DNA of 64,000 bases from Lytechinus pictus (taxonomy: Eukaryota). Location of the stretch: contig NC_087258.1 in the NCBI RefSeq assembly GCF_037042905.1, positions 27,590,001 to 27,654,000 of the forward strand, read 5' to 3'. Both the position numbers and the translations under genes were made by a program. Below, one piece after another: positions 1-53,381 of this stretch (the first letter of the stretch is position 1; each line of letters starts with the position of its first letter). Below the pieces are notes generated by a model that was not told the DNA's origin, ran no database searches, and saw only the letters and a program-made list of their open reading frames with translations.

Positions 1-420
1 GGCCACCGCACACCTTACGACTGTTCACGATCCGATTTTGGAACAAAATCGCATTTTGCTCATTTTCTGAAAATGTGAATGAACATATCATTTTATTTGA
101 GGTTAAAATTAATTGAAAGAATACCAGTACTAATATAACCATTATGAAAGATTGCAAGCCTTTATTTAGGAGTAAAGGCCAAATTAGTTTCAAGTCGTAG
201 CTAATCGTACGACTGCTATGACATCATTACGACTAGGTATAAAATTTGCTTTTATTCTAAGATGGATGATAGCTTAGTCACAGTTTTGAACATAGGTATT
301 CGTACGGTGATTTAAAACATTACACAGTAAGATGTTCCATGTCTCAATATTAGCATCAAATTCTACTACGTTTTATTCCAAAATCGGGTCGCAGACCAAT
401 CGTAAGGTGTGTGGTCGCCC
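1..420. mobile_element. MITE with terminal inverted repeats (PIF/Harbinger-like), left end at window edge
   Basis: Start GGCCACCGCACACCTTACGA...CCGATTTTGGAA is the imperfect reverse complement of the end TTCCAAAATCGGGTCGC...TCGTAAGGTGTGTGGTCGCCC, which is followed by TTA. Confidence 0.7.
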
Positions 421-504
421 TTATGCTCAACACTCAATTTTTATCAGTGATTAAATTTTACCATTAGAAGAGCTCATAACTTCCCATTTACTATCAACAG
501 GTAT

Positions 505-2460
505 ATGAGTGGCAGACTTCAGAGGGATTTGCAGAGCTGCCCAACATCCACAGGTCCAGATGTCCTATCTATAGTAAGTATGGCAGCATCTAGAGAGGAA
601 CCTCTTAATGAAAGTAGTGAACAATGTCTAAGGGTTAATGATTGCCAGATAAACTTAGTGACATACATGACAACAGAGATGTATAATCTTCAAGACTTCA
701 GGGATTTTATTGATAGGAATCATGGAAACATAAATATTGATCAGAGAAATGAGGAGGGTCAAACTGCTCTCATGAGAGCTTGTCTTGATAGAAACAAAGC
801 AGTTGTGGAGTTTCTGTTAGAGAAAGGAGCAGATCCTAATTTGAGATGCATAAGAGAGGGAAATACTGCTCTACACTTTCTTAGCCGAAGTCGACCATGC
901 TGTGACACAGAAAGCGAGACAGACTTGGAAGATTGGGAACCTATTCTCGACAACGTGTCAGAAGCCGAGAGCAGTTGCAAAGACTTCTTGACTCGGGAAA
1001 GCCAAGATGATACTTACAACCGTTTGATCATGAAGAACTGCTTGGATGAAAAATACTGTCAATATACTGTGTTTAAAAAGCAGAAGAGAAGTGCTAGAAT
1101 AATAGATACTTTAATATTACAGTACGGTGCTTTGATTCAGGTCAACAATTATGGATTGACGCCTGCAGATATTGCTGGGCTACATAGGAAACTATCAACT
1201 GTGTTGTACTACATAAATCGAGAATATATTCCAAAGTCAGAGCAAACAACAGCGTTAGAAATCATGGGATCGTCGTTCATGATGAAGGATGAGTATGAGA
1301 AAGCGTACAAAGCATTTACAATGGCAGTAGAAAAGTGCTATGATAATCCACACACTGAGCAAGGCAATATCAAGAAATCTGATTTAGAAGATTGTCTAGG
1401 TCGCTCGGAATGCAGGAGTCTCCATGACCTCAGAAAGATTAATGGTGACAAATATGCAATGAGAGTTGAAGGTATGCTGGTTGCGGATCGTGTCTTACCC
1501 GATTCACTGAAGGAAGAATTTATTTATGAACGTCTTGTGGATTATGGATATTCCTTATTGTTTCTGTGGGATACGCTGGATGCAGGCTTCAGGGTGTTCA
1601 CAAAATGTCTTTGTCTAGAACGCAAAGGATGTTTGCCTGTTGGAAGGGTCCTTTTGTCATTGAGGTACAGCATCAGCCAAGCTACAAGCTCTCCAAGCCT
1701 ACATAGGTTTATTCCACAATATGTGAGTCTACTTTGTCAGTCTTTAGAGCTTTGTATTGATGTCATCAGGCAGGTCAATGTTAAAAACCTTAAAAGCCAC
1801 ATCCAGGAAATTCTAATCAATCTATCCAAGATCTTATATTCCTTCACTAATAGTCTTTGCAGTGTCCAAGGTGTGGAATGTGTGATTCGGCCAGTTGTCC
1901 AGATGATCAAAGTCATATGGAGCAGGTTAGACAGAGCTTCAGTCTTCAGGGATCCATACAGACACCTCACCAACTCTGTCTGTCATAAGTTACTTTGTGA
2001 TATGGTTGCGCACTTTAGATACTACTTTGACTTTGAGGAAAACAGGAACACTTGTCACTGTTTCAAGCAAGTACTTGTCCACTTAGTCCAAGTTGAAGGT
2101 GCCTCAGATATTGATATCAATGGAGATACCCTTCTGCATTCATTGATGGGTCTTGTGTTCTCGGGAGAGATTCCGATGGTTCAAGACATATCTCTTCTAT
2201 TTCTAAGGTATGGCTGTCCGTACAATTTGAGGAATAATAGAGGGAAGAGACCTATTGATGTTGCACAGGAAGAGGCTTTTAGTCTTGATGATTCCTACCT
2301 TTCAGATCTTACTGAGCTCTACAGTCTCCTGTCTTCTACTGTACTCACTTTACAGGAGATTGCTATCAGAACTATTCTAAGGTGTAACATCCCTTATCAG
2401 GATAAACTTCCCAGGAAGCTCTGTTCCATGATACAGGTGGATCCGGTGGAATTTCCTTAA
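505..2460 (+). CDS. FEM1-like: FEM-1-like ankyrin/TPR-like/VHL-box protein, paralog 1 (single coding exon; alternative start MAAS at 580)
   Basis: 651-aa ORF. ANK motifs GQTALMRAC..GADPN..GNTALH and GLTPADIA; FEM1-type ALEIMGS and ECRSLHDL..DKYAMRVEGMLVADRVLP; C-terminal ANKs GDTLLH and NNRGKRPID; BC-box TLQEIAIRTI and Cul2-box LPRKLCSMI. Splice acceptor AG at 499-500. Confidence 0.88.
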   Translation: MSGRLQRDLQSCPTSTGPDVLSIVSMAASREEPLNESSEQCLRVNDCQINLVTYMTTEMYNLQDFRDFIDRNHGNINIDQRNEEGQTALMRACLDRNKAVVEFLLEKGADPNLRCIREGNTALHFLSRSRPCCDTESETDLEDWEPILDNVSEAESSCKDFLTRESQDDTYNRLIMKNCLDEKYCQYTVFKKQKRSARIIDTLILQYGALIQVNNYGLTPADIAGLHRKLSTVLYYINREYIPKSEQTTALEIMGSSFMMKDEYEKAYKAFTMAVEKCYDNPHTEQGNIKKSDLEDCLGRSECRSLHDLRKINGDKYAMRVEGMLVADRVLPDSLKEEFIYERLVDYGYSLLFLWDTLDAGFRVFTKCLCLERKGCLPVGRVLLSLRYSISQATSSPSLHRFIPQYVSLLCQSLELCIDVIRQVNVKNLKSHIQEILINLSKILYSFTNSLCSVQGVECVIRPVVQMIKVIWSRLDRASVFRDPYRHLTNSVCHKLLCDMVAHFRYYFDFEENRNTCHCFKQVLVHLVQVEGASDIDINGDTLLHSLMGLVFSGEIPMVQDISLLFLRYGCPYNLRNNRGKRPIDVAQEEAFSLDDSYLSDLTELYSLLSSTVLTLQEIAIRTILRCNIPYQDKLPRKLCSMIQVDPVEFP

Positions 2461-4101
2461 GTGCTGCTGTTCTGGACTGCTTGCATGCCATCATTACAAA
2501 CAGGCTCTTTCCACGGAAGCCTCAAGACTACATGTACATGTATCAAATCTGCTCATGATAATGACTTGCTCTTTTTTTTGAAATTTAAACTTTATTTAAT
2601 GTGCGCGAAATAATAATTTGATGTGCACATACATATATAGAATGGTACATTTTTGTCATTTGACATGCCCATTTTGCTAGCTGTAGCCTAGGCCTTGTGA
2701 ATTACAGACCCATGCCATACATGAACCAGCTAGCACGTCAAAGATTTCTTTGTAAGCATTCATATACAGTTGCATTATGCTAATTTATTGCATTTCCATG
2801 CCAATAGCTATTTCATCCATCTTAACATGCTGCATGGATAATGATATTGATGACATCGACCCGTATTCTGAAGTCCGATATAAAGGAGAATCCAGCCTTG
2901 GTCATAAAATAATATCATGTGGAAAGGAGAAAAATAGAGATAAAAAGAATGGTGAAAGTTTGAAGGAAATTGACAAGCAATAAGAAAGTTATCCCTAATG
3001 GAGCATTGCAAGAAACTTACGATTAGTCTATTTTTGTTCCCTAAATATATCATAAGTCTTGAAATTAATTGCGAATTTGAAATTTATTGCTTATCTGCTT
3101 CTTGAAACAAGGCATTTAATCTCATTTGCTGCAGTTAAAATTTATCTATTGTAAAATGGTAACAGAATATTTGCAATTGATTGCAAATATTTTCTTGCAA
3201 CACCCCCTATTAAAGACTATGTAGATTTCAAATTGTCAACAGGGTAAGTCAATTATAACAAGAGACAAGGACAACTTTCCCATAGGCCATGTACCTAATT
3301 ATCAGGGATTTGTGGTTTTCTCTTAAGTAGGCCTACCCATTTCCCTGGGGCAGTAATCTAAATATAATCCAGGAAGTATATTGTTTGATATCCTCATGAA
3401 AGAAAAATATAATTTGAAGTAAAACTTTTGAGAAATGACATTTTAGCCATTTTATTTATTGGAGTACAGGGAAGAGTAGTCCTTGCCTTACATCTCTAAG
3501 ACATCACCTATGCTGCCAATTTGAAGTCTCCACGGGTATAATGATTACCAATATTTACAACTTTTAAAAATTCATAACTTTTTTATTGTCCGATATTGTT
3601 CAAACTTTCACCTTGTCTGATTTTTCTTTTCCCTCTAAAAACAAGTTTTTATTTGGGTAGGATTTCCCTTTAACTTTGGCCATGGCCTAACTCTGTGCTA
3701 AAGTTATTGGAAGCCGAAAATATTGAACATTTGTTTATATGGTATATTTCTAATGTTTGTCGTGCTCTTTTTAATAATGAATGAAACTGTTTGGCTTTAC
3801 TATTTTCAGACAATTATAAATTATCTGAGTGTCAAATAAGCTGATAAATTAAAACCTGTACCATTAGATATTTGTGCCACAATTGGCTATCCATAGTTAA
3901 ACAACAACTTTATACTTATACCAGAGTTTGAATTAAACCTGACTTCAGAATATAGGCCAATGTGCTGGATTTTTCACATGCATGATTTTACTAATATCTG
4001 TATTGTTTTGCCTCTTTTCAGATATGATTGATGTGCTGCATGCTGAGTTGAACTGCTAGTTTTGTGCTTCTGAAAGGTCACCAGGTAATGCATGTTTAGT
4101 C

Positions 4102-6045
4102 ATGGCTTCTACTGGACCTGTAGCATCATCCAGTGTGAAAGACAGTAGCAGTTCTAGAAGAGAGGGTCATCTGGTCAGGATCATTGAGGATGATGCCACA
4201 CTGGCAATGGTTCAGGATTTCATCAAGCAGCAGGATGGGAAGTCTGACTTGAATGAGAGAAATAAGCATGGTCAGACGGCATTGATGGTGGCATGTTTGC
4301 ATGGTAAGCTGGAAATTGTGAAGTATCTTCTTGAGATAGGAGCCGATCATCATCTTACCGCACCTGACAAAAAGAACACTGCGTTGCACTTTGCTTGCAT
4401 GTTCATGCAAAGCATCAGTGAAGCAGACAGTGCACTGAAAGGAGAAAAGACTGTAGAAGGGGCTAAAAATCCAGCAAGTGGAGAAGCCAAAGGAGATGGT
4501 TTAGAGGCTCATTTTGATACCAAAGCAGATACGATTGTATTACAACTTATCCTTAACCTCCTGTTGCACAAAGCCAAATTCCAGAAGAATGATGATGTAC
4601 TATATCCACTTGACTTAGCTGCATTGAACAAGAGACTCGCTGTCTTTGCTTTCCTTGGCAGTAAAGATCTAGTGGAAAAGTCTATGCTTGCTAGGGGATT
4701 GGACATTCTGGGTTACTTATTGGCTCTGGAGGATAAACATAAAGATGCAGCAAGAATACTGGAAAAAGCTGTGATGGAAAGGGAGAGTGACACTGACAAT
4801 CCAGATCCTGTCGAATTCACATCAGATCTTGAAACTTTCCTCAGTCAAAAAGAGTGCAAGACAATGGCAGATTGGAACGCATTGAAGAAAACTAATCATG
4901 CAACCAAAGTTAATGCTTTCCTTGTTGGTGATCGTGTTCTTCCAGAGAAGTTGAAGCCAAAGGTACTGTATGGACCACTTGCAAAATACGGACATGAGTT
5001 GCTTTTCAAGATGAAAACAAGGGCTAAAGGGTTTCTCATATTTGATGCATGTCTTCATCTGGAAAGGAAAGGATTGCTTTATTTGAATACTGTTTTGATG
5101 TACCTGCGGATGAGTATACCTAGAGCAGAAACCCTTGATATTTTCAGAGATACTCAGTTTATTAACAGCACATGCAAGACGTTAGGAAAGTACATTGATG
5201 TCATAAAAGATGTCCCCATTGATCATCTTGAGAAAAGTGTCAAAGACATCATGTGCAACCTTGGTCGTATCCTGTTTGATGTAGTTAATGAATATCAAAG
5301 TCTTGAAATCTTGGAGCAGTTTCTCACACCCATCATAGAGATAATCAATGTCATTTGGGATAGGATTCCAAAGCCTGAAGCTACTGGCAGTGGTATCCTG
5401 TTCCCCACTATTTCTGTCTGTCACAATGTTCTGCTTCACCTGGGAAGAGAGTTCTGTCCAAATATCTTCTTCTGTGCCCCTCATCCCTCCAGGACACGCA
5501 GGTACATCACTTTCCTCTCCGAGCGGTTGATTGCTAGTCTTCTGCATGTTGAAGGTGCCCTTGATTTAGACTGTCATGGGAACACGATGATTCACACGCT
5601 GATGGTGTACTCACAAACATTATCACCACAACTGATTATAGATATTGCAAAGCTCCTGATAAGACATGGCTGCCCTACTGATGCAAAGAACAAGAAAGGG
5701 GAAACCCCCTATGACATCAACATGGAAATGAGAGAAAATGAAGATGACTTTGATGATGAAGATGATTTTGAGGATGAGGATGGAGATGAACCTCGCCTAC
5801 AACTGGACCCACGTGGAATGGGCATTGTGTATGAGCTCTTGAAGGGTCCAGAAGAAGTGTATTCTCTTCAAGAGCTTGCTGCAAGGTCTATCCTTAGCTA
5901 TAGGATTCCTTATCGCCAGAAGCTTCCATCTACACTGTTTGCTATTCTAAGAGACCCAGTCTTGGATGAAAATTATGAAGCTGGAGACTCTGAGACATCT
6001 AGTGACTATGATTCAGATGATGAACAAAACTGCCCAATATCTTGA
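4102..6045 (+). CDS. FEM1-like: FEM-1-like ankyrin/TPR-like/VHL-box protein, paralog 2
   Basis: 647-aa ORF. NKHGQTALMVACLHGKLEIVKYLLEIGAD..NTALH resembles FEM1 ANK5-6; ECKTMADW..FLVGDRVLP; GNTMIH and NKKGETP; SLQELAARSIL..IPY..LPSTLFAIL. Acceptor TTTTGCCTCTTTTCAG ends at 4021, branch-like CTAAT at 3991. Confidence 0.9.
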   Translation: MASTGPVASSSVKDSSSSRREGHLVRIIEDDATLAMVQDFIKQQDGKSDLNERNKHGQTALMVACLHGKLEIVKYLLEIGADHHLTAPDKKNTALHFACMFMQSISEADSALKGEKTVEGAKNPASGEAKGDGLEAHFDTKADTIVLQLILNLLLHKAKFQKNDDVLYPLDLAALNKRLAVFAFLGSKDLVEKSMLARGLDILGYLLALEDKHKDAARILEKAVMERESDTDNPDPVEFTSDLETFLSQKECKTMADWNALKKTNHATKVNAFLVGDRVLPEKLKPKVLYGPLAKYGHELLFKMKTRAKGFLIFDACLHLERKGLLYLNTVLMYLRMSIPRAETLDIFRDTQFINSTCKTLGKYIDVIKDVPIDHLEKSVKDIMCNLGRILFDVVNEYQSLEILEQFLTPIIEIINVIWDRIPKPEATGSGILFPTISVCHNVLLHLGREFCPNIFFCAPHPSRTRRYITFLSERLIASLLHVEGALDLDCHGNTMIHTLMVYSQTLSPQLIIDIAKLLIRHGCPTDAKNKKGETPYDINMEMRENEDDFDDEDDFEDEDGDEPRLQLDPRGMGIVYELLKGPEEVYSLQELAARSILSYRIPYRQKLPSTLFAILRDPVLDENYEAGDSETSSDYDSDDEQNCPIS

Positions 6046-24026: not shown

Positions 24027-25730
24027 ATGGCATCCAATCCAGAGAGCGATTTGCACAAACTTGAAGATCCTCCTACACAAAAGAAGATTGACCAGTGGAT
24101 CAAAGATGGTATTGATTTGGTGTTTCTAATTGGCAATGGGGAGATAAGAGATGCAGTTGGTGTGAGACAATATCTTGATTTGTCAAGCAATCCCATTGAC
24201 AAAAGGAATGATACAGGACAAACACCATTGATGGTTGCATGCAGAAATAGAAAGAAGGATGTTGTTACTCTTTTGTTGGACGCTGGGGCTGACCCTAACC
24301 TGACTTGCACTGTCAACGGTAGCACTGCACTTCATTATGCCTGTGAAGGGGAGGGAAGTGTAATGTTGCGATGTAGAGAGGAACCAAGTTACCCTCAAGA
24401 CGAGCTCCGTGTCATCATAGATATCGTGAAAGTACTTGCAAGTCATGGCGCTGTTCTGCAGGTAAATGACAAGGGATTGAGTCCAGTTTATATTGCAGCT
24501 TTGAATCGTTTCAAAGATGTAGTGGATTTCTTCACATCAAGCAATATGCTAACGGTGCCAATTAGTGTCAAGGTCAAAGCATATGAACTGTTGGGAGCTT
24601 CACAGGCAGTCTTTGATAAGCACCATACTATGGATGCCTGTAAATCATTTCATCTAGCAGCATCTTTTCATTCTTCTGAGGATAGCGATGTAACATCTTG
24701 CCATGTCACTTCTGATCTGGATGCCTGGTTTGTAAATTTGATGGACAAAAAGAATCCAAGTGACTCTGAAATGTCTAAGGTCAAAATGAAAGCCTTGTCT
24801 ATTGCTGTTAAAAGCTTACCTAACAAGGCTCTTGACAACTTCTGGAATGATTCAATCAGTCTTGCCGTAGATGATTTATTTAATGGTAAGGCTATTGAGA
24901 AAGGATATGAACTGTTTGCTGCACTCATAAAAGCTGAAATGAAGCATGAGAGTCTCTCTGGCTCTGTCATGGAGATACTGGATGAGAAGGGTACATCAAC
25001 GCTCTATCGGGATTCGCCAAAACTACACATGCCTTTTATTCCTAAACTGTTGGAGGGTTATGCTGATGCTTATAGAATCAGCAATACCCAGCCCCCGTAC
25101 AAGAGCATTGAACATATGGGGAATATGATATTCAACATTGCATATTACTTGTCTGAATCAAAATACCTAGTGGAATGCCTTCCGTTCATTGGCCACATTG
25201 TTAACATGAAGAGGAAAGATGTGAGTGGAAATGATGGGGATGAACGTAAATCAGTTTTGTATGTCTTCTTTGAACGGATGGCAGAGGATATGTGGGAGGA
25301 TGTGTACAGCTGGCAAAGCAAACAAACAAGAAATAGATTGAAGTTTACCATTTGTAGGCTCCTCCACTACAATGGTCTGGACAGAGACTTGGACAAATCC
25401 CTCTTGGAAACACTACTTGAGGTTGCTCCTGTGGCTCGTGATAGGGATTTTATTGTGTCAGTTGCTCAAGTATTAATACGGTATGGGTGCCCGACTGAGG
25501 ATGGTTGCCTTGTCCTTGGTGATATAGAGGATGATGACCAAGAGTTGTCAGAGTTATTTGAACCTACAAAACCAATCCCTCTAGAGGAACTAGCTGCCAG
25601 AGCAATACTCAACAATAGGATACCATACAGAGAGATGCTTCCTGATGTCTTGTGTGAAAAAATAGAGGGAGAAAAGCTGTTCCCTGATTCCTCTGATTTG
25701 GATTCATCAACTGAATCAGACAATGACTGA
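24027..25730 (+). CDS. FEM1-like: FEM-1-like protein, paralog 3 (short subfamily, degenerate C-terminal ANKs)
   Basis: 567 aa. GQTPLMVAC..GADPN..GSTALHYAC, GLSPVYIAAL, KAYELLGASQAVFDK (cf. FEM1 ALELLGAT..DK), PLEELAARAIL..IPY..LPDVLCEKI, acidic tail. Acceptor TTTCCTCAG ends at 23985. Confidence 0.88.
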   Translation: MASNPESDLHKLEDPPTQKKIDQWIKDGIDLVFLIGNGEIRDAVGVRQYLDLSSNPIDKRNDTGQTPLMVACRNRKKDVVTLLLDAGADPNLTCTVNGSTALHYACEGEGSVMLRCREEPSYPQDELRVIIDIVKVLASHGAVLQVNDKGLSPVYIAALNRFKDVVDFFTSSNMLTVPISVKVKAYELLGASQAVFDKHHTMDACKSFHLAASFHSSEDSDVTSCHVTSDLDAWFVNLMDKKNPSDSEMSKVKMKALSIAVKSLPNKALDNFWNDSISLAVDDLFNGKAIEKGYELFAALIKAEMKHESLSGSVMEILDEKGTSTLYRDSPKLHMPFIPKLLEGYADAYRISNTQPPYKSIEHMGNMIFNIAYYLSESKYLVECLPFIGHIVNMKRKDVSGNDGDERKSVLYVFFERMAEDMWEDVYSWQSKQTRNRLKFTICRLLHYNGLDRDLDKSLLETLLEVAPVARDRDFIVSVAQVLIRYGCPTEDGCLVLGDIEDDDQELSELFEPTKPIPLEELAARAILNNRIPYREMLPDVLCEKIEGEKLFPDSSDLDSSTESDND

Positions 25731-27470: not shown

Positions 27471-29210
27471 ATGGCATCAGAATCAGAAAACGATTGTCAA
27501 GAAGTTGGGGATCCTCCTTGCCAGAAGGAGAAGATTGATCAGTGGGTCAAAGATGGTGTTGATTTGGTCTCTCTGATGCATGAAGGCAAGGTGAGCAATG
27601 CGGATGATGTGAGACAATACCTCGCCCTTTCAAATAATCCCGCTTGTGTGGATAAACCAAATGGAGTAGGACAAACACCTTTGATGATTGCCTGCAGAAA
27701 TAGACAGAAAGACATTGTTAATCTCTTGTTGGAAGCTGGAGCTGACCCTAACCTGACTTGCACTTATTATGGTTGCACTGCACTTCATTATGCCTGCGAA
27801 GGGGAGAAAAATCTAATAAAACGGTGTAGAGAGGAACCAAACTACCCTCAATACGAGCTCAGTGATATCATAGAGATTGTGGAAGCACTTGGCAATCAGG
27901 GCGCCATTCTGAAGATGAATGATAAGGGGTTGAGTCCAGTTTGTGTTGCAGCTTTGAACAGTTTCAAAGATGTAGTGGATTACTTTGCTTCCAGCTCTGT
28001 TATTTCAATGCCTGTTGATGTCAAGGTTAAAGCTTTTGAACTGTTGGGAGTTTCGCAAGCAGTCTTTGATAAGCACCATACTATGGATGCCTGTAAATCA
28101 TTTCATCTAGCAGCATCTTTTCATTCTTCTGAGGATAGCAATGTAACACCTTGCCATGTCACTCCTGATCTTGATGCCTGGTTTGTAAATTTGATGGACA
28201 AAGAGAATCCAAGTGACGATGATATGTTTGTGGTCAAAGCAAAAGCTATAGTCATTGGTTTGCATTGTCTTTCTAATGAAACCAGAAATGAACATGACTT
28301 CTACGACACCTTGGCCGAATATGGTCAGCTAGCATTGTTTGAAGGCAAAGCTTCACAAGAAGGATACGAGATGCTTCGAGACCATATCCACGGAGAGATG
28401 ACGGATGAATACACAACAATAGGGACAGTGATGGAGATGATCAGGGATGCATTAGAACCTGCACTATGTACTCGAAGTGGTGAATCTTCAATGTTAAAAT
28501 ATATTATCAAACTGTTGGATACCTATGCTGAAGAAGTGGATGCAGATAGCAGTGCGCAGCTAGATGTGTGGGAAGTAGTTGAGGTTCTTGGAAATGTGAT
28601 GTTTGGGTTTACATATTATCACTCACAGACAAAATACCTAGAGTCCAGTTTTCCATCTGTGGTGCGTGTTTTCAACTGTCTCAAAAAAATTGCTACAGTT
28701 TATCATGCAGGGATGGAGAAGTCAATTCTGTCAGTCTTTATGGATAAGTTGGCTCAAACCATGTGGGAAGATATGTACTGTGGCCAGAGCAACGAGACAA
28801 AGAAACGCTTGAAGTATACTATCTGTCGGCTCCTCCACTACATTGGCTTTGATCCAGATACAGATTCATTCTTGCTCGACACCTTCCTTCAAGTTTTCCG
28901 TGTTGCTTATGATACAGAGTGGATACTCTCCATTGCTCACGTGTTGATCCGCTATGGTTGTGACACTTCATGTGTTACGCTTGTGGATGTGGATGAAGAT
29001 GATGAAGATATGCCAGTACTGCAGGAACTCTTGAGTCCATCTACTAGTCCTCCCACACTTGAGGAGCTTTCTGCTCGGGCATTACTCTGCTATGGGATAC
29101 CATACAGAGAGAGACTTCCTGATATCCTGTGTGAGAAAATAGAAGGAGAAAAGCTGCATCCAGATCGTTCTGAATTGTACTCTTCACCAGAAAATTCTGA
29201 TTCAGATTAG
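27471..29210 (+). CDS. FEM1-like: FEM-1-like protein, paralog 4
   Basis: The ORF track starts at TTG 27435; the homologous ATG (MAS) is at 27471, after acceptor CCTTTTGTAG|ATTCTTGAGG (AG 27429-27430). Same ANK/TPR-like motifs; TLEELSARALL..IPY..LPDILCEKI. Confidence 0.88.
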   Translation: MASESENDCQEVGDPPCQKEKIDQWVKDGVDLVSLMHEGKVSNADDVRQYLALSNNPACVDKPNGVGQTPLMIACRNRQKDIVNLLLEAGADPNLTCTYYGCTALHYACEGEKNLIKRCREEPNYPQYELSDIIEIVEALGNQGAILKMNDKGLSPVCVAALNSFKDVVDYFASSSVISMPVDVKVKAFELLGVSQAVFDKHHTMDACKSFHLAASFHSSEDSNVTPCHVTPDLDAWFVNLMDKENPSDDDMFVVKAKAIVIGLHCLSNETRNEHDFYDTLAEYGQLALFEGKASQEGYEMLRDHIHGEMTDEYTTIGTVMEMIRDALEPALCTRSGESSMLKYIIKLLDTYAEEVDADSSAQLDVWEVVEVLGNVMFGFTYYHSQTKYLESSFPSVVRVFNCLKKIATVYHAGMEKSILSVFMDKLAQTMWEDMYCGQSNETKKRLKYTICRLLHYIGFDPDTDSFLLDTFLQVFRVAYDTEWILSIAHVLIRYGCDTSCVTLVDVDEDDEDMPVLQELLSPSTSPPTLEELSARALLCYGIPYRERLPDILCEKIEGEKLHPDRSELYSSPENSDSD

Positions 29211-32230: not shown

Positions 32231-33952
32231 ATGGCATCGGTCATAGAAAGTGGTTGCGCAGAAGATGGAAATTGTCGTATTGATGAGTGGATCAAAGATG
32301 GTGTTGACTTAGTACATCTCATTGAGCACAGACAGTGTAATGTGGATGGTGTGAGACGGTACCTTGATTCTTCAGGTGATCCTTCTTGTGTTAACAGATG
32401 TAATCACTTGGGACAAACACCCCTGATGGTCGCCTGCAAATATAGACAGAAAGACATTGTTAATCTCTTGTTGGAAGCTGGAGCTGACCCTAACCTGACT
32501 TGCACTGTCAGTGGTAGCACTGCTCTTCATTATGCCTGTCAAGGGGAAGAAAATCTCATTCAAAAGTGTAGAGAGGAACCAAACTTCCCTCAATTTGCCC
32601 TTGAAGACGTCGTAGAGATTGTGACAGAACTTTGCAATCAGGGCGCAGTTCTGAAGATGAATGATGAGGGATTGAGTCCAGTTTGTGTTGCAGCTTTGAA
32701 CAGTTTCAAAGATGTAGTGGATTACTTTGTTTCCAGCTCTGTTGTTTCAACGCCTGTTGATGTCAAGGTCAAAGCATATGAACTTTTGGGAGTTTCGCAG
32801 GCAGTCTTTGATAAGCACCATACTATGGATGCCTGTAAATCATTTCATCTAGCTGCATCTTTTCATTCTTCTGAGAATAGCGATGTAACACCTTGCCATG
32901 TCACCTCTGATCTTGATGCCTGGTTTGTAAATTTGATGGACAAAGAGAATCCAAGTGACTCTGAAAGGTTTGAGGTCAAGGCAAAAGCTTTCATCTTTGG
33001 TATGCAGTCTTTGCCACATAAAACCAGGGATAGACATGATTTCTACAGAGAAATGAGTGAATGTGCCCGAAGCGCTTTGTTTAAGGGCAAAGCTCCACAG
33101 GATGGATACGAAATGCTTTTAAACCTTATTCATAGGGAGATGTCAGATGATTACCCTCTGGGATCTGTAATGGACATGATACAACATGCACTAGCACCCA
33201 GGCTGCGTCCTCTGCCACGCATATTTAAATATGTCAACAAACTGTTGGATGCGTACGCTAATGCATTTACAGCAGATACTTGTAGCACCCAGTTGAAAAT
33301 AAGGAAATGGGATATTGTTCAGAGCCTGGGTGAACTGATGTTCAATTATTCATATTATTACTCATCAAAATATCTTGAATCAAGCTTCCCGGCTGTGGCC
33401 ACTATCGTCAACTGCATCAAGCAGATATCTGCAGAGGACCTTGTGGGAGATGGCGGAAAGGTGTCAATCCTTGAAAGTTTTATTAATAAGTTGGCTGAAG
33501 CCATGTGGGAAGATATATACTGTGGTCAAAGCAAAGAAACCAGAAATAGGTTGAAGTTTACAATCTGCAGACTCCTCCATTTCACTGGTTTTGATCCAGA
33601 TATAGATCCATCTTTACTTGACACCTTTCTCCAAGTTGTTCGTGTTGCCTATGACACGGAGTGGATACTTGCTGTATCTTGCGTATTGATCCGTTATGGT
33701 TGTTCAACTGGAGTTGTTACCCTTGATGAGGGTATAGATGAGGATGATCCTGAAGTACAGGTACTTCTTTCACTCTTAAGCCCACCCACAACTCCTGTTC
33801 CTCTTGAGGAACTGGCTTCTCGGTTAATTCTCCGAACAAGGATACCTTACAGAGAGAGGCTTCCTGATGTCCTGTGTGAGAAAATAGAGGGTGAAAAGCT
33901 AACCCCCGATCCTTCTCAAATGTATTCATCACCAGAATTTGATGCAGATTAA
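32231..33952 (+). CDS. FEM1-like: FEM-1-like protein, paralog 5
   Basis: The ORF-track start at 32069 lies upstream of acceptor CCTCCTCAG|ATTCTTGAGG (AG 32195-32196); homologous MAS start at 32231. PLEELASRLIL..IPY..LPDVLCEKI. Confidence 0.88.
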   Translation: MASVIESGCAEDGNCRIDEWIKDGVDLVHLIEHRQCNVDGVRRYLDSSGDPSCVNRCNHLGQTPLMVACKYRQKDIVNLLLEAGADPNLTCTVSGSTALHYACQGEENLIQKCREEPNFPQFALEDVVEIVTELCNQGAVLKMNDEGLSPVCVAALNSFKDVVDYFVSSSVVSTPVDVKVKAYELLGVSQAVFDKHHTMDACKSFHLAASFHSSENSDVTPCHVTSDLDAWFVNLMDKENPSDSERFEVKAKAFIFGMQSLPHKTRDRHDFYREMSECARSALFKGKAPQDGYEMLLNLIHREMSDDYPLGSVMDMIQHALAPRLRPLPRIFKYVNKLLDAYANAFTADTCSTQLKIRKWDIVQSLGELMFNYSYYYSSKYLESSFPAVATIVNCIKQISAEDLVGDGGKVSILESFINKLAEAMWEDIYCGQSKETRNRLKFTICRLLHFTGFDPDIDPSLLDTFLQVVRVAYDTEWILAVSCVLIRYGCSTGVVTLDEGIDEDDPEVQVLLSLLSPPTTPVPLEELASRLILRTRIPYRERLPDVLCEKIEGEKLTPDPSQMYSSPEFDAD

Positions 33953-35689: not shown

Positions 35690-36055
35690 ATGACATCTGC
35701 AAGTGACCATCCAGAACTCAGGGATCCTTCTTGTCATAAGAAGATTGATCAGTGGATCAAAGATGGTATTGATTTGGTGTGTCCAATTGACAATGGGGAG
35801 AGATGCACATGGTGTGAGACAATATCTTGCTTTGTCAAGCAATCCCATTGACAAAAGGAATGAGACAGGACAAACACCATTGATGATTGCATGCAGAAAT
35901 AGAAAGACATTGTTAATATCTTGTTGGAAGGCGGAGGTAACCCTAATCTGACTTGCACTGTCAATGGTAGCACTGCCCCCATTATGCCTGCGAAGGGGAG
36001 GAAAGTTTTACATGTTGAAATAATCCAAACCATCCAACGCAGGAGCTTCAAACAC
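35690..36055 (+). pseudogene. Truncated, frameshifted FEM-1-like pseudogene (5' fragment)
   Basis: MTSASDHPELRDPSCHKKIDQWIKDGIDLV, VRQYLALSSNPIDKRNETGQTPLMIACRNR and PNLTCTVNGSTA lie in different frames; homology ends at ~36055. Confidence 0.85.
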
Positions 36056-38665: not shown

Positions 38666-39382
38666 CTAATGATGTGTCACATGATCTACCCGTCTGAAAG
38701 CATGCTGGTAGTCAGAAAGGATTGAGTTTGTAGTAAGGTGTGTCATTAGATGGCTGTCCACTATATGCTCCATAAGTTTACAGCATACACTGGTCAAGGA
38801 TATAGGGCGATAATTAGCCGGTTCATTTTTAGGACCCTTCTTGTAGATAGCAGCGATGTTCGCTTTACGCCAATCTTCGGGAAGGATCCCTTGGTCATTT
38901 GACTGTTTAAATATGAATTGCAGGACTGGAGCTATTTCTTCAGCTGTAATTTTAAGAACACGGTTTGGTATGCTATCTGGTCCTGCGGCCTTTAAAACAT
39001 CTAACTTGTTCAATAGCTTGAGGATGCCACTAACCATGAAGTTGATATCTGGCATATCAGGGATGTTTCTTGTTGGAAGGTTGGGGGTTTGGGTTTCGTC
39101 CCTGGAGAAGACGCTCTGGAACTGTTCGGCAAGTGCGTCTGCTTTCCCTTGGTCATCAGTGATGATTTCGTTTCCCTTCTTAAGGCTCTGGATCCCTACG
39201 TTGTCCTTGTGCCTGGTTTTAATGTATTTCCAGAACTGTTTATTACCGGCTTCTGAAAGAGTAGCTATGAATGTCCGTTGGGCTTTTCTAAGTTCTTTAT
39301 TTACTACTCTCTTAATTTTGTTGGTATTTGTCCAATCTATCTTGCCCTCCGAGTTGCTTCGCCTTTGAATAAGTTGTGCCAT
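38666..39382 (-). mobile_element. CR1/L2-group LINE reverse-transcriptase fragment
   Basis: KAAGPDSIP, LPEDWRKANIAAIYKKG..PANYRPISLTSVCCKLME, YQHAFR; truncated before YADD. Confidence 0.9.
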
Positions 39383-41580: not shown

Positions 41581-43326
41581 ATGTTCACACTGATGGCATC
41601 ATACATGGAAAGTAGTGTGAAGAATAAGATAGTTCAATGGATCAAAGACGGAGTTGATTTGGTGTCCATTATTGAAGGAGGAGAGATAGGAGATGCAGAG
41701 GATGTTAGACTGTACCTATCCTATTCAAGTGATCCTTGTGTTAACAGATGTAATGGATCAGGACAAACACCCTTGATGATTGCTTGCAGAAATAGACAAA
41801 AACACATTGTTAATATCTTGTTGGAAGCCAGAGCCGACCCTAACCTGACTTGCACTGTCAATGGTAGCACTGCTCTTCATTATGCCTGTCAAGGGGACAA
41901 ACATATGATTTCCATATGTCGGACTAAAATAAAGTACCCAAAACAGGAGCTTCAAAGAGTTATTGAGATCATTGAAATCCTGATCCACAATGGAGCAATA
42001 ATGCAAATGAATGATGATGGATTGAGTCCTGTGTGTGTGGCAGCTCTAAACAGCTTCAAAGATGTGGTGGAGTTCTTTTCATCAAATAGTGAAATTCCAG
42101 TGCCTCCCGGAGACATGGTCAAGGCATATGAATTGTTGGGAGTTTCACAAGCACTCTTTGATGTATACCATTTAGTTGATGCATGTCACTCCTTTCACCT
42201 TGCTGCATCTACATGGAAACATCCTGGAAATGAGAATGATTTATCTTCACTTAATGTTGACTGTGCCCTCGACAACTTCTTTACTCACATGACAACTCTT
42301 GTTCTCAACTGTGATCAGAGAAGTAAGATCAGGCAGAAGGCATTCACTATTGGTATTAAATGCATACCTGACAACGTGAAAAATAAATATGATTTCTGGC
42401 GATTTACATCCAGTTACACTGATCCAGCTTTCTTTGAGATTGGTTCAGAAGAGGGCTACAACCTCTTGTTGTCTTTGGTAAAGAAAGAAATGCTTGGGAA
42501 ATGTCCACTTGGAACTGTCCTGGACATGATTCAGAATGCATTGACGTCCAGATTGTCAACATCATTAGGGGTGAAGTTCATTCCAAGGTTGTTGCAGGCA
42601 TACGCAGAGGGATTCCAAGAAGATAGCAAGATGCTCAGAGAGAAAAGACCAGAGATCTTAGAACTATCGGGAGGTCTGTTGTTCAATTTTGCATACTACC
42701 AATCACAAGCAAAATATCTTGAGGAAGTGCTGTCATATGTCAAGGATATTCTGCATTGCATCAAGATGTATGCTGAAGATGGCTGTCCAACAACTGGTGA
42801 CCGTCCAGTATCAGTCATCTCTGTTTTCTTTGAAAACATGGCCAATACAATGTTTGACGATGTGTATTGTGGGCAGACCAAGGAAGCAAGGAATCGATTG
42901 AAGTATGTCATTTCCAGTCTCCTCTTCCACAACGGCTACGATCCTGCTTCACATTCTTCATTACTAGAAACACTGGTGAGGATTGTTGCTGCGGCCCATG
43001 ATAGAGATTTCATTATCCCAATTGCCAAGATGCTGATTCGATATGGTTGCCCACCGGACAGTGTTTGCATTGAGCAATCTGAGCAGGATTATCCAGAGGT
43101 GATGGAAATGTTGCCTCTTTTGAACCCAACGTCTCCTCCATCTCTTGAGGAGCTAAGCACACAAGTTATCCTGCGCAACAATGTTCCTTACAGAGAAAGA
43201 CTTCCAAGTTTGCTCTCTGAGAGAATAGATGCGGATATGTACTTCAGACCACCTCCTTCTGATTTAGATTCTTCTGTTTCTTCAGATTCTTCTGAGAAAT
43301 CAGATGAATTTGAGAGAATTGAATAA
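41581..43326 (+). CDS. FEM1-like: FEM-1-like protein, paralog 6 (homologous MAS start at 41593)
   Basis: Acceptor CCCCTCAG|ATTCTTGAGG (AG 41555-41556). GQTPLMIAC, GSTALHYAC, KAYELLGVSQ, SLEELSTQVIL..VPY..LPSLLSERI, Ser/Asp-rich tail. Confidence 0.88.
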   Translation: MFTLMASYMESSVKNKIVQWIKDGVDLVSIIEGGEIGDAEDVRLYLSYSSDPCVNRCNGSGQTPLMIACRNRQKHIVNILLEARADPNLTCTVNGSTALHYACQGDKHMISICRTKIKYPKQELQRVIEIIEILIHNGAIMQMNDDGLSPVCVAALNSFKDVVEFFSSNSEIPVPPGDMVKAYELLGVSQALFDVYHLVDACHSFHLAASTWKHPGNENDLSSLNVDCALDNFFTHMTTLVLNCDQRSKIRQKAFTIGIKCIPDNVKNKYDFWRFTSSYTDPAFFEIGSEEGYNLLLSLVKKEMLGKCPLGTVLDMIQNALTSRLSTSLGVKFIPRLLQAYAEGFQEDSKMLREKRPEILELSGGLLFNFAYYQSQAKYLEEVLSYVKDILHCIKMYAEDGCPTTGDRPVSVISVFFENMANTMFDDVYCGQTKEARNRLKYVISSLLFHNGYDPASHSSLLETLVRIVAAAHDRDFIIPIAKMLIRYGCPPDSVCIEQSEQDYPEVMEMLPLLNPTSPPSLEELSTQVILRNNVPYRERLPSLLSERIDADMYFRPPPSDLDSSVSSDSSEKSDEFERIE

Positions 43327-51482: not shown

Positions 51483-53381
51483 ATGAGTAAGAAGAAGAAA
51501 GACCACATTAAAGGCCAAAGAGACCCCATCAATCTTGCCTCTATTATGATTGAAGTACGTGAATCCCGAGATACATGTCTCGTACTCAGTGTGGCCAGAA
51601 TTAAATCACTCTGTTCTACTCGCGAGGTGGATGTGAATTCTAGGAACCACCTTGGATGGTCACCTTTGATGATTGCATGTATGCACACAAACAATGAATT
51701 GGTTAGCCTTCTACTCGAGCATGGTGCTGACCCGAATGCTACAAGCACCAAAGGGGGTAACACACCTATGCATTTTGCATCAGTGGGATGCAATTGCTGC
51801 TGCTTGTGGGGAGAAAGCTGCGATTTATTCGATAGCTACCTTAACAAGGTAGCCAAGAAGCCAAGAATAGACATGATGAGGAACCTGATCAGTCATGGAG
51901 CAACCCTGCAGTGTAATTCTGATGGGTTGGATCCCCCATCATTTGCTGCACTACACAGATTCAAGGCTGCTGTGGACTTTTTCGTCAACAGAGGCACGTG
52001 TAGATTAAAGGTACCCGCTGAACAGAAAGCACGAGCCTGTGAAATCTATGCTGTGGTGCTTGCATTGACTATGGGCTTTTGCAAAGGTGATGATGTGACT
52101 CCTCATGAATATCTCTGTAAAGCGTTTGCTATCCGGAAGGGTAGTGGAGTGCCAGTACCAGATCAGGAGAGAGTAGGAATAGCCAATCATTTTCATTTAT
52201 TTAGAACAAAGCGGGCATGCACCACCGAAAAGGATTGGCAACGAATTCAATCTGACAATTGGGCTGTAAGAATTCAGTGCTTCCTAGTTGCAAGTAGAGT
52301 GTTACCAGTGAAAAAGAGGGACATATATCTCTTTCCAAGACTTCTAGCCCATGGACATGATTGTTATCTCTTTTCCAAAGGAAATGAACGGCGTTCTGAG
52401 GGTACTCAAATATTTGAGGAAGCAGTCCGATGGGAATTGAAGTCCACCACGGCCAAGCTGGGGAGTGTCCTGCAGATGATCCTTAATGTCCTCTACGTCA
52501 TTTTCTTTGTTAGGCGAGATATTCAGCTTAAACATGACCTGTTTGGGGAGTGCTACAAGCTTCTTGAACTATGTCTTCAAGAATTCACGGAACTCTCAGA
52601 TGCTCGTCTACACAAGTTTGCAACAGAGTTGGCCCATGATCACCTGGGAGCATTCCTGTATCATGTTCCTCTCTTTGATTTCTCCATGTCAAAGGAAATG
52701 TTCAAGTCACTTCTTCAGGTCTTTGGACGTATGATTTCCATGATGAGAAGAAGATGTGGAAGAAGTTCCCCATCAGTTACCCACTATATTATGGATAGGA
52801 TGGCTCAAATACTCTTGGACTCTGATAGTAAGGGTACATTGAAAGAAAACCGTTTGAAGCTGCTCATTTCAGCTCTAGTTCAGTGTGAAGATGCGACACA
52901 GATAAGTGACAGTGGTAATTCGATGTTGCATCCTTTGTTCAATATTATCGCGTTCGATCTGTATCCGTCGTTACTCCGGGATGTGTCTCTTATCCTTATC
53001 CGCAATGGATGTGATCCTGATGTTCGCAACGCTGATGGTAAGACTGTAAAAGAGATGTTTGTTAATTACGTATTCTTTGATCCAAACTCACCCAAGGACA
53101 AACAAGTGGTGACTGTCATCTCTCCGCCAACAGAAGTTTTGAGATTGGAAGAGATAGCAGCTAGGAAAATCTTGCGTCACAAGATCCCCCATGAAGGTAT
53201 TCTGCCGAGACACCTGTCTGTCATGGTTAAAGGAGAACCCGAACCAGACGCCAAGCTCTTTCTTTCAAGTCCTCCAAGATTTAATTTTAAGTATGGTGAT
53301 TGGAATTACGATGATGAGAGTTTGGATGAGTCCGATGATGATGATGATGATGATAGTTGGGATGGCGAGAATTATAATTAG
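51483..53381 (+). CDS. FEM1-like: FEM-1-like protein, paralog 7 (long subfamily, Cys-rich insert)
   Basis: 632 aa. GWSPLMIAC..GADPN..GNTPMHFA, ACTTEKDW..DNWAVRIQCFLVASRVLP, GNSMLH, NADGKT, RLEEIAARKIL..IPH..LPRHLSVMV, poly-Asp tail. Acceptor TGTACAG|ATTCTT (AG 51448-51449). Confidence 0.88.
   Translation: MSKKKKDHIKGQRDPINLASIMIEVRESRDTCLVLSVARIKSLCSTREVDVNSRNHLGWSPLMIACMHTNNELVSLLLEHGADPNATSTKGGNTPMHFASVGCNCCCLWGESCDLFDSYLNKVAKKPRIDMMRNLISHGATLQCNSDGLDPPSFAALHRFKAAVDFFVNRGTCRLKVPAEQKARACEIYAVVLALTMGFCKGDDVTPHEYLCKAFAIRKGSGVPVPDQERVGIANHFHLFRTKRACTTEKDWQRIQSDNWAVRIQCFLVASRVLPVKKRDIYLFPRLLAHGHDCYLFSKGNERRSEGTQIFEEAVRWELKSTTAKLGSVLQMILNVLYVIFFVRRDIQLKHDLFGECYKLLELCLQEFTELSDARLHKFATELAHDHLGAFLYHVPLFDFSMSKEMFKSLLQVFGRMISMMRRRCGRSSPSVTHYIMDRMAQILLDSDSKGTLKENRLKLLISALVQCEDATQISDSGNSMLHPLFNIIAFDLYPSLLRDVSLILIRNGCDPDVRNADGKTVKEMFVNYVFFDPNSPKDKQVVTVISPPTEVLRLEEIAARKILRHKIPHEGILPRHLSVMVKGEPEPDAKLFLSSPPRFNFKYGDWNYDDESLDESDDDDDDDSWDGENYN

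Follow-up and report, generated by a model that had tools for sequence, protein, structure and literature searches.

A tandem array of short FEM1-like genes in the sea urchin Lytechinus pictus: predicted loss of the canonical C-degron pocket and conservation of the VHL box

The textbook readers of Arg-ended C-degrons are the FEM1 proteins, of which FEM1B also reads Pro-ended ones and serves as a degrader-drug target. Here we describe a family of short FEM1-like genes from Lytechinus pictus, starting from a 64,000-nucleotide stretch of contig NC_087258.1 (RefSeq assembly GCF_037042905.1, positions 27,590,001 to 27,654,000 of the forward strand), which we call the window and in whose coordinates positions are given. 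The window contains seven plus-strand frames of 567-651 codons that are homologous to FEM1. The first of them, open reading frame 1 (ORF1), holds the gene that we call paralogue 1, a 626-residue coding sequence at 580..2460 that begins MAASREE. Its product opens with a cryptic capping ankyrin-like repeat (residues 23-55, 646..744), which the structural model, its superposition and hhalign place as the equivalent of FEM1 ANK4. The ANK5 equivalent follows (residues 56-88, 745..843; NEEGQTALMRAC...GADPN), and then the ANK6 equivalent (844..1134; GNTALHF...), in which alignment and model place an insert between the two helices (about residues 102-165, ~883-1074). After the ANK7 equivalent (residues 186-215, 1135..1224; NNYGLTPADIAGL...), assigned by phmmer, alignment and model, come a TPR-like helical elbow and a C-terminal ANK8-10 region (residues 216-585, 1225..2334). 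The last domain is a VHL box (residues 586-620, 2335..2439), with the BC box L591xxI594A595 and the Cul2 box L610-P611xxL614. Pfam detects only ankyrin repeats in the window paralogues, with matches above the gathering score to Ank_2, Ank_3, Ank_4, Ank_5 and Ank (residues 72-128 of ORF1 in its 651-residue numbering, and 36-101 of ORF2), and ankyrin repeats are likewise the sole annotation of the public models for these genes.

FEM1B is laid out as ANK1-7, TPR1-5, ANK8-10 and a VHL box (PMC11053023). The initial annotation had equated the first recognizable repeats of the array's proteins with the last three N-terminal repeats of FEM1, and a phmmer search against the PDB bears this out. Codons 61-212 of paralogue 1 (window 760-1215) encode three ankyrin repeats, whose matches are residues 138-196 and those from 206 in FEM1B and residues 141-192 in FEM1C, the FEM1C segment being GHTCLM, GNTALH and GMTPLL, that is, ANK5-7. 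The same search matched ORF1 to FEM1B with an E-value of 7.7e-15 and paired residues 204-639 with FEM1B 206-620. When a profile of 19 paralogues was compared with a profile of nine canonical FEM1 sequences, hhalign returned a probability of 100% and an E-value of 3.5e-52 over 475 columns, and the alignment begins at D42 of ORF1, which is matched to K145 of sea urchin canonical FEM1 in the second helix of ANK4, passes continuously through the TPR and ANK8-10 regions and stops where the VHL box ends. In our alignment the same repeat layout is seen in all seven paralogues of the window and in ten others from the genome, with 45-65 residues between a conserved MAS start and the first recognizable repeat.

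An AlphaFold model of the 626-residue paralogue 1, computed with a 49-sequence alignment as input, has a mean predicted local distance difference test (pLDDT) score of 85.3 and a predicted template modeling (pTM) score of 0.81; the model of paralogue 3 (w3) scores 88.5 and 0.86. The top-ranked structures in Foldseek are FEM1B and FEM1C. Residues 18-356 of the paralogue 1 model superpose on FEM1C 104-385 (6ldp_A, with the CDK5R1 degron) with a Z-score of 22.8 and a root-mean-square deviation (rmsd) of 2.7 Å over 258 residues, residues 23-613 superpose on full FEM1B 122-617 (8je2_D) with a Z-score of 21.9, and residues 15-315 of the w3 model superpose on FEM1C 96-386. Designed ankyrin repeat proteins (DARPins) with four repeats superpose on residues 23-217 of paralogue 1 with an rmsd of 1.8-2.0 Å. 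In both models a cryptic ankyrin cap, formed in paralogue 1 by about 30 leading residues (helices 26-32 and 37-46), occupies the position of ANK4, and the w3 subfamily has one extra helix that is equivalent to the second helix of ANK3. The lead ahead of the first recognizable repeat, earlier described as ~35-85 non-ankyrin residues, is therefore not all non-ankyrin, about 30 of those residues being predicted to fold as an ANK4-like cap, and the figure of 85 for ORF1 is an artefact of a spurious upstream ATG at 505. Superposition and profile alignment both find the TPR elbow and the C-terminal ANK8-10 repeats in the short paralogues. The TPR region is preceded by four ankyrin-like repeats, namely the cap and ANK5-7, and by 4.5 in the w3 subfamily, which falls short of the canonical FEM1 complement. 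From ANK4 on, fold and order of parts are the same as in FEM1B and FEM1C (FEM1A).

Two further features set the short paralogues apart from FEM1B and FEM1C. A hypervariable insert of about 15-80 amino acids splits their ANK6; it is the least conserved part of the protein (majority fraction 0.16), is often Cys-rich (PCCD, CNCCCLWGESC, HCPCNLKSGTC) and is predicted to be disordered, as are residues 1-22 of paralogue 1, with pLDDT values of 38-58 over residues 110-170. Most paralogues also carry an acidic Ser/Asp-rich tail after the VHL box, for example at window 5962-6042, 25677-25727 and 53250-53378, whereas in canonical FEM1 the box is directly followed by the C-terminus. One minus-strand copy elsewhere (L002:1873-2739) has a tail of ~290 residues with DDEDER-type repeats.

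In FEM1B the -1 pocket for Arg/Pro C-degrons lies in ANK3-4 and is formed by Y84, W93, S122, R126 and F130; the C-terminal residue of the degron sits among Y84, W93 and F130 while S122 and R126 hold its carboxylate, and either R126A or Y84A/F130A abolishes degradation (PMC11053023). The pocket counterparts W100, P131 and R133 are invariant in the nine-sequence canonical FEM1 profile. The short paralogues lack ANK1-3 in both the structural and the profile alignment, and their ANK4 is degenerate, the STPLRAACF motif being absent in 19 of the 19 aligned. The NSTPLRAACFDG repeat, noted as missing in the initial annotation, is indeed found in none of the short paralogues aligned; TALH[FY]AC-like motifs are present. 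The replacement of ALHDCAE by ALH[FY] had also been taken as a mark of the loss, a point that we do not retain, since human FEM1B itself reads ALHFAAE and the motif is not diagnostic. The short paralogues offer no conserved equivalent of FEM1B Y84, W93, S122, R126 or F130, and across the 19 paralogues the cap helix shows no conserved basic residue (Arg or Lys) at any position, whatever the register. The proposal that these proteins had lost the N-terminal FEM1 repeats that form the Arg/C-degron pocket thus agrees with both alignment and superposition, and loss of the canonical degron pocket from the family is well supported by sequence comparison and modeling. Having lost the ANK3-4 site of the -1 pocket, the short paralogues are predicted not to read canonical Arg- or Pro-ended C-degrons.

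The VHL box presents a different picture of conservation. For comparison we took contact residues of FEM1C from PMC12580893 and of FEM1B from PMC11053023; in FEM1C, Elongin C or CUL2 is contacted by L586, L589, A590, I594, I599, I605, P606, L609 and V613 (PMC12580893). In the paralogue 1 numbering, L591, P611 and L614 are identical in all 19 paralogues, positions 594, 599, 604, 610 and 618 are aliphatic in all 19, and A595 is Ala in 15 and Ser in four. Read in order, the contact positions are L, L/I, A15/S4, I/L/V, I/V/L, L/V/I, P, L and I/V/L/M, each holding in 19/19 apart from the Ala/Ser position. Contact residues for Elongin C and CUL2 are conserved here as in FEM1B and FEM1C, and the BC box is, with ANK5, one of the two most conserved stretches of the family, ANK5 being the first. 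This is the pattern that a working VHL box would show, and the short paralogues are predicted to dock on Elongin B/C-CUL2 through it. Skp1_POZ (Skp1/Elongin C-like) matches in the sea urchin genome are split across exons.

Ratios of nonsynonymous to synonymous substitution (dN/dS, Nei-Gojobori) between diverged paralogue pairs are 0.28-0.53 overall. By region they are 0.23-0.64 for the TPR part, 0.20-0.57 for residues 451-585 and 0.15-0.35 for the VHL box. We rejected the reading that the copies are pseudogenes because of these overall ratios and because at least 17 copies have undisrupted frames.

The beginning of paralogue 1 is closely linked to the gene that follows it. Two stranded RNA-seq runs from the same species contain 52-59 reads per run that break at window 573 and resume with 28 letters equal to window 4022-4049. 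These reads show that the GTAAGT at 574..579, which ends 1 nt before the paralogue 1 start codon, is a used donor and that the ...ctcttttcag preceding 4022 is a used acceptor. They differ from the assembly at two fixed sites (L010 3534 and 3538), which we take as polymorphism. A non-coding leader exon of paralogues 1 and 2 accordingly occupies 500..573; its 3' end is given by the RNA and its 5' end is placed at about 500 by an acceptor-like caacag. Within this exon, the ATG at 505 opens 23 codons that after splicing continue as ATA TGA, making a 24-codon upstream open reading frame (uORF). The joined exon, 4022..6045, carries the paralogue 2 coding sequence (4102-6045, 647 residues), and an in-frame TAG lies at 4057-4059 between the acceptor and the paralogue 2 ATG. 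The intron in the 5' untranslated region of paralogue 2 transcripts thereby encloses the entire paralogue 1 coding sequence (580-2460), which has the same orientation, and splicing versus read-through at the 574 donor would decide which receptor is made. A related gene outside the window, L007, which is 75% identical to paralogue 1, has the same GTAAGT directly ahead of its ATG, and the frame upstream of 580 is not conserved in it. We reset the start of ORF1 to M26 (window 580), the ATG at 505 being spurious for the receptor coding sequence.

Taking alignments and models together, we consider it fairly probable that the short FEM1-like genes encode substrate receptors of cullin-2 RING ligase (CRL2) with changed, paralogue-specific recognition. 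In the ancestor of the family, FEM1 repeats ANK1-3 would have been lost, with the fourth persisting as a sequence-degenerate cap, and each protein would retain four ankyrin-like repeats, the TPR elbow, the C-terminal ankyrin repeats and a strictly conserved VHL box. The VHL box would dock each paralogue on Elongin B/C-CUL2, making it a CRL2 substrate receptor. Other determinants would then be recognized through the shortened groove, the hypervariable ANK6 insert and the TPR region, and different paralogues may take different targets. We regard as unlikely a more elaborate version, in which the genes form a diversified CRL2 receptor repertoire, each member reads another non-C-degron determinant through its Cys-rich ANK6 insert and shortened groove, and shared non-coding leaders splice alternatively to downstream coding exons so that specificity is chosen by variable exon, possibly for defense or for clearance of maternal proteins.

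Several observations count against receptors with changed recognition. The register of the cap helix relative to helix 1 of ANK4 is uncertain by one or two positions, and this helix lies outside the hhalign alignment. The FEM1B groove residues I160, Y163, H185, C186 and H218 are not conserved in the retained repeats, which leaves a groove ligand without positive evidence; the positions compared there are contacts to upstream degron residues or to the FNIP1 zinc site. The I160 position is hydrophobic in 17 of the 19 paralogues (I9 V3 L3 F2 R2), and the Y163, H185, C186 and H218 positions vary, so that the zinc-site residues of FEM1B, like those of its -1 pocket, are a point of difference from the short paralogues. 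Recent duplicates at L005 have a dN/dS of ~1.2, from very few changes. Finally, RNA depth over the paralogue 1 coding sequence is only 0-2.5x in the two runs and could come from intronic reads of ORF2 pre-mRNA; contig run X1 has no depth there, and X15 resembles low-coverage DNA.

An obvious concern is that the proteins only look short because further 5' coding exons encoding ANK1-4 have been missed, the outcome that the initial annotation named as fatal to its claim. A pyrimidine tract and AG acceptor do lie 34-80 nt before the ATG in every gene checked, and w3, w4, w5 and w6 have no in-frame stop between acceptor and ATG. Those four genes are close paralogues, however, and their acceptor-to-ATG spacing of 41, 40, 34 and 36 nt keeps no common reading frame. 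Most paralogues have an in-frame stop between acceptor and ATG, and among the 17 genes checked, 13 have one 2-24 codons before the start. The conserved MAS (or MSS/MAA) start is common to all the genes, and the RefSeq models of two other urchins begin there as well (L. variegatus P0270, P0124 and P0002; Strongylocentrotus purpuratus P0001); P0270, the orthologue of paralogue 1, has 624 residues, is 92% identical and starts MAASREEPLN. The leader adds nothing to the coding sequence, since its uORF stops after splicing and a TAG precedes the ORF2 ATG. From stops, spacing, RefSeq starts and RNA we conclude that the missing repeats are not encoded by an exon further upstream, and an annotation artefact is extremely unlikely. 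A second way to keep the canonical function would be for the cap, together with the extra helix of the w3 subfamily, to rebuild an equivalent -1 pocket from other residues and so still read Arg/C-degrons. The cap is at the right place, the ANK4 position, and has an invariant Leu (L26, with neighbors V/S/A, S/T, L/I and I/M across the 19 paralogues) with a conserved Asp/Asn ahead of it; in addition, the position of FEM1B F193, alone among the retained positions compared, stays aromatic (Y14/F5). Yet ANK3, the source of Y84 and W93, is absent or present only as a single helix, the cap ranks low in conservation compared to most of the protein (0.41), and the 19-paralogue alignment has no conserved counterpart of the carboxylate-binding Arg, a residue that canonical FEM1s never vary and that FEM1B cannot do without (PMC11053023). 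We judge continued reading of Arg/C-degrons very unlikely.

Two other explanations accept the loss of the pocket and question what the proteins do. They could be decoys or regulators that bind Elongin BC-CUL2, or associate with canonical FEM1, but bring in no substrate, and thereby titrate or modulate CRL2. The absence of a canonical degron pocket and the position of the VHL box among the two best conserved parts would both suit such a role. An Elongin BC/CUL2 sponge, however, would need only the VHL box, and it would have no need for many diverged paralogues bearing a hypervariable surface insert; instead, at least 17 copies preserve the full architecture of 570-650 residues, and the TPR part and residues 451-585, like the box, have dN/dS values well below 1. 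This purifying selection on the TPR and C-terminal ankyrin regions favors receptors over bare decoys, and we think decoys quite unlikely. Between the two outcomes first put forward for the array, new specificity or decoys titrating ElonginBC/CUL2, new specificity fits the comparisons better. It is also conceivable, although improbable in our estimate, that the proteins have no cullin role at all and are ankyrin/TPR scaffolds whose VHL-box-like helix is kept for folding. Several Elongin C contact positions do vary (the equivalents of H597, H604 and F612), and the long acidic tails after the box are lacking in canonical FEM1. Against this, conservation tracks the published FEM1C contacts (PMC12580893), and the Pro of the Cul2 box is conserved with no obvious folding role. 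CRL2 receptors with altered recognition remain the interpretation that we prefer.

To place the family we compared it with two longer genes of the same genome. The one canonical FEM1 gene found, L012 (C5:16.78 Mb, 644 residues), has a complete pocket and keeps NSTPLRAACFDGH, GHTCLMISCYKGH and GNTALHDCAESGS intact. It resembles the short paralogues in its single-exon coding region and in its TPR, ANK8-10 and VHL-box organization, but it differs from them in having that pocket and is only ~20% identical to them. The other gene, L016, is a divergent FEM1-like gene of 671 residues (G000:C4:30,175,000-30,180,500, open reading frame 1053-3068, minus strand). It shares with the short paralogues an insert between the ANK6 helices, but still has ANK1-4, including a PLHRACF helix. 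In a maximum-likelihood tree of the region from ANK5 to the VHL box (51 rows, all kept, by 514 columns; built with a quick search and with the nine canonical sequences as the root), all 41 short proteins group together in a single clade with a Shimodaira-Hasegawa-like approximate likelihood ratio (SH-aLRT) value of 99, and its sister is L016, on a long branch that calls for caution. The simplest reading of this topology is a single truncation after the split from canonical FEM1, and L016 may represent the state before truncation. An exhaustive profile search collected 49 clusters at E-values below 1e-30, most of them from ENA or Logan assemblies; in nearly all full-length clusters the TPR region starts at residue 145-215, compared to 250-260 in canonical FEM1s. 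Three cluster proteins, P0143, P0145 and P0187, have one extra regular ankyrin repeat before ANK5, yet are nested in the short clade; the repeat was either regained or lost more than once.

Lineage-specific expansions of cullin-RING receptors are common among F-box, BTB/MATH and SOCS-box proteins: they are tandem and fast-evolving, with the adaptor box kept and the substrate surface diverging. The present family differs in that its receptor is FEM1-derived and predicted to dock on CUL2, and a literature search found no published FEM1 expansion in echinoderms or other invertebrates. Expansions of this type being common, we see no surprise of principle here; the relevance is to degron recognition and to the evolution of E3 receptors. 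What the sea urchin offers is a natural family in which the CUL2-docking module, TPR elbow and C-terminal repeats appear to have been kept while the -1 pocket was deleted, after which the gene multiplied. Should the paralogues work as ligase receptors, substrate recognition by the FEM1 scaffold would be possible without its canonical pocket, and the set would be a ready series for mapping working surfaces. The link to FEM1 is in any case a gain in annotation for echinoderm genomes, where public records say "uncharacterized protein" and note ankyrin repeats only.

A six-frame search of the 812 Mb genome found at least 17 intact FEM1-like relatives and a few broken ones, and the short copies lie in tandem clusters on C14 (22.45, 23.71 and 27.56-27.66 Mb), C10 and C11, compared to the single canonical FEM1 and the long divergent L016. 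One further candidate, L008 (C15:20.95 Mb, 780 residues), has a FEM1-like N-terminus, yet its PDB matches are ordinary ankyrins, and it was dropped. The remaining genes of the window, all on the plus strand, are paralogue 3 at 24027..25730 (567 residues, the second protein modeled), paralogue 4 at 27471..29210 (579 residues), paralogue 5 at 32231..33952 (573 residues), paralogue 6 at 41593..43326 (577 residues) and paralogue 7 at 51483..53381 (632 residues), the last with an in-frame stop four codons (12 nt) before its ATG. The closest named protein to paralogue 1 is an "uncharacterized protein" model of Lytechinus variegatus with 92% identity, the L. variegatus LOC121427448 model P0002 matches paralogue 4 almost exactly, and another close named match is a Strongylocentrotus purpuratus "uncharacterized protein" model.

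The array also holds several minor features. Between paralogues 5 and 6, a FEM1-like pseudogene remnant at 35699-35998 (+) is 45% identical to residues 6-108 of paralogue 3 and is interrupted by two TGA codons and one TAG. A 238-codon open reading frame at 38666-39382 (-) reads as reverse-transcriptase-like (..YRPISLTSVCCKLMEHIV..) and is probably a fragment of a non-LTR (long terminal repeat) retrotransposon within the array. Paralogue 1 and L007 (G000:C14:27.56 Mb, minus strand) have a synonymous divergence (dS) of 0-0.14 over residues 56-215 (ANK5-7), with a dS of 0 across 57 aligned insert codons, compared to 0.7-1.06 elsewhere; the pattern suggests that the two genes, which lie ~26 kb from each other in opposite orientations, recently underwent gene conversion in their ankyrin part. 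Immediately before the leader exon, window 1-419 resembles a miniature inverted-repeat transposable element (MITE) whose terminal inverted repeats (1-48 and 371-419) are 85-90% complementary, and its read and contig depth is very high, as for a dispersed repeat.

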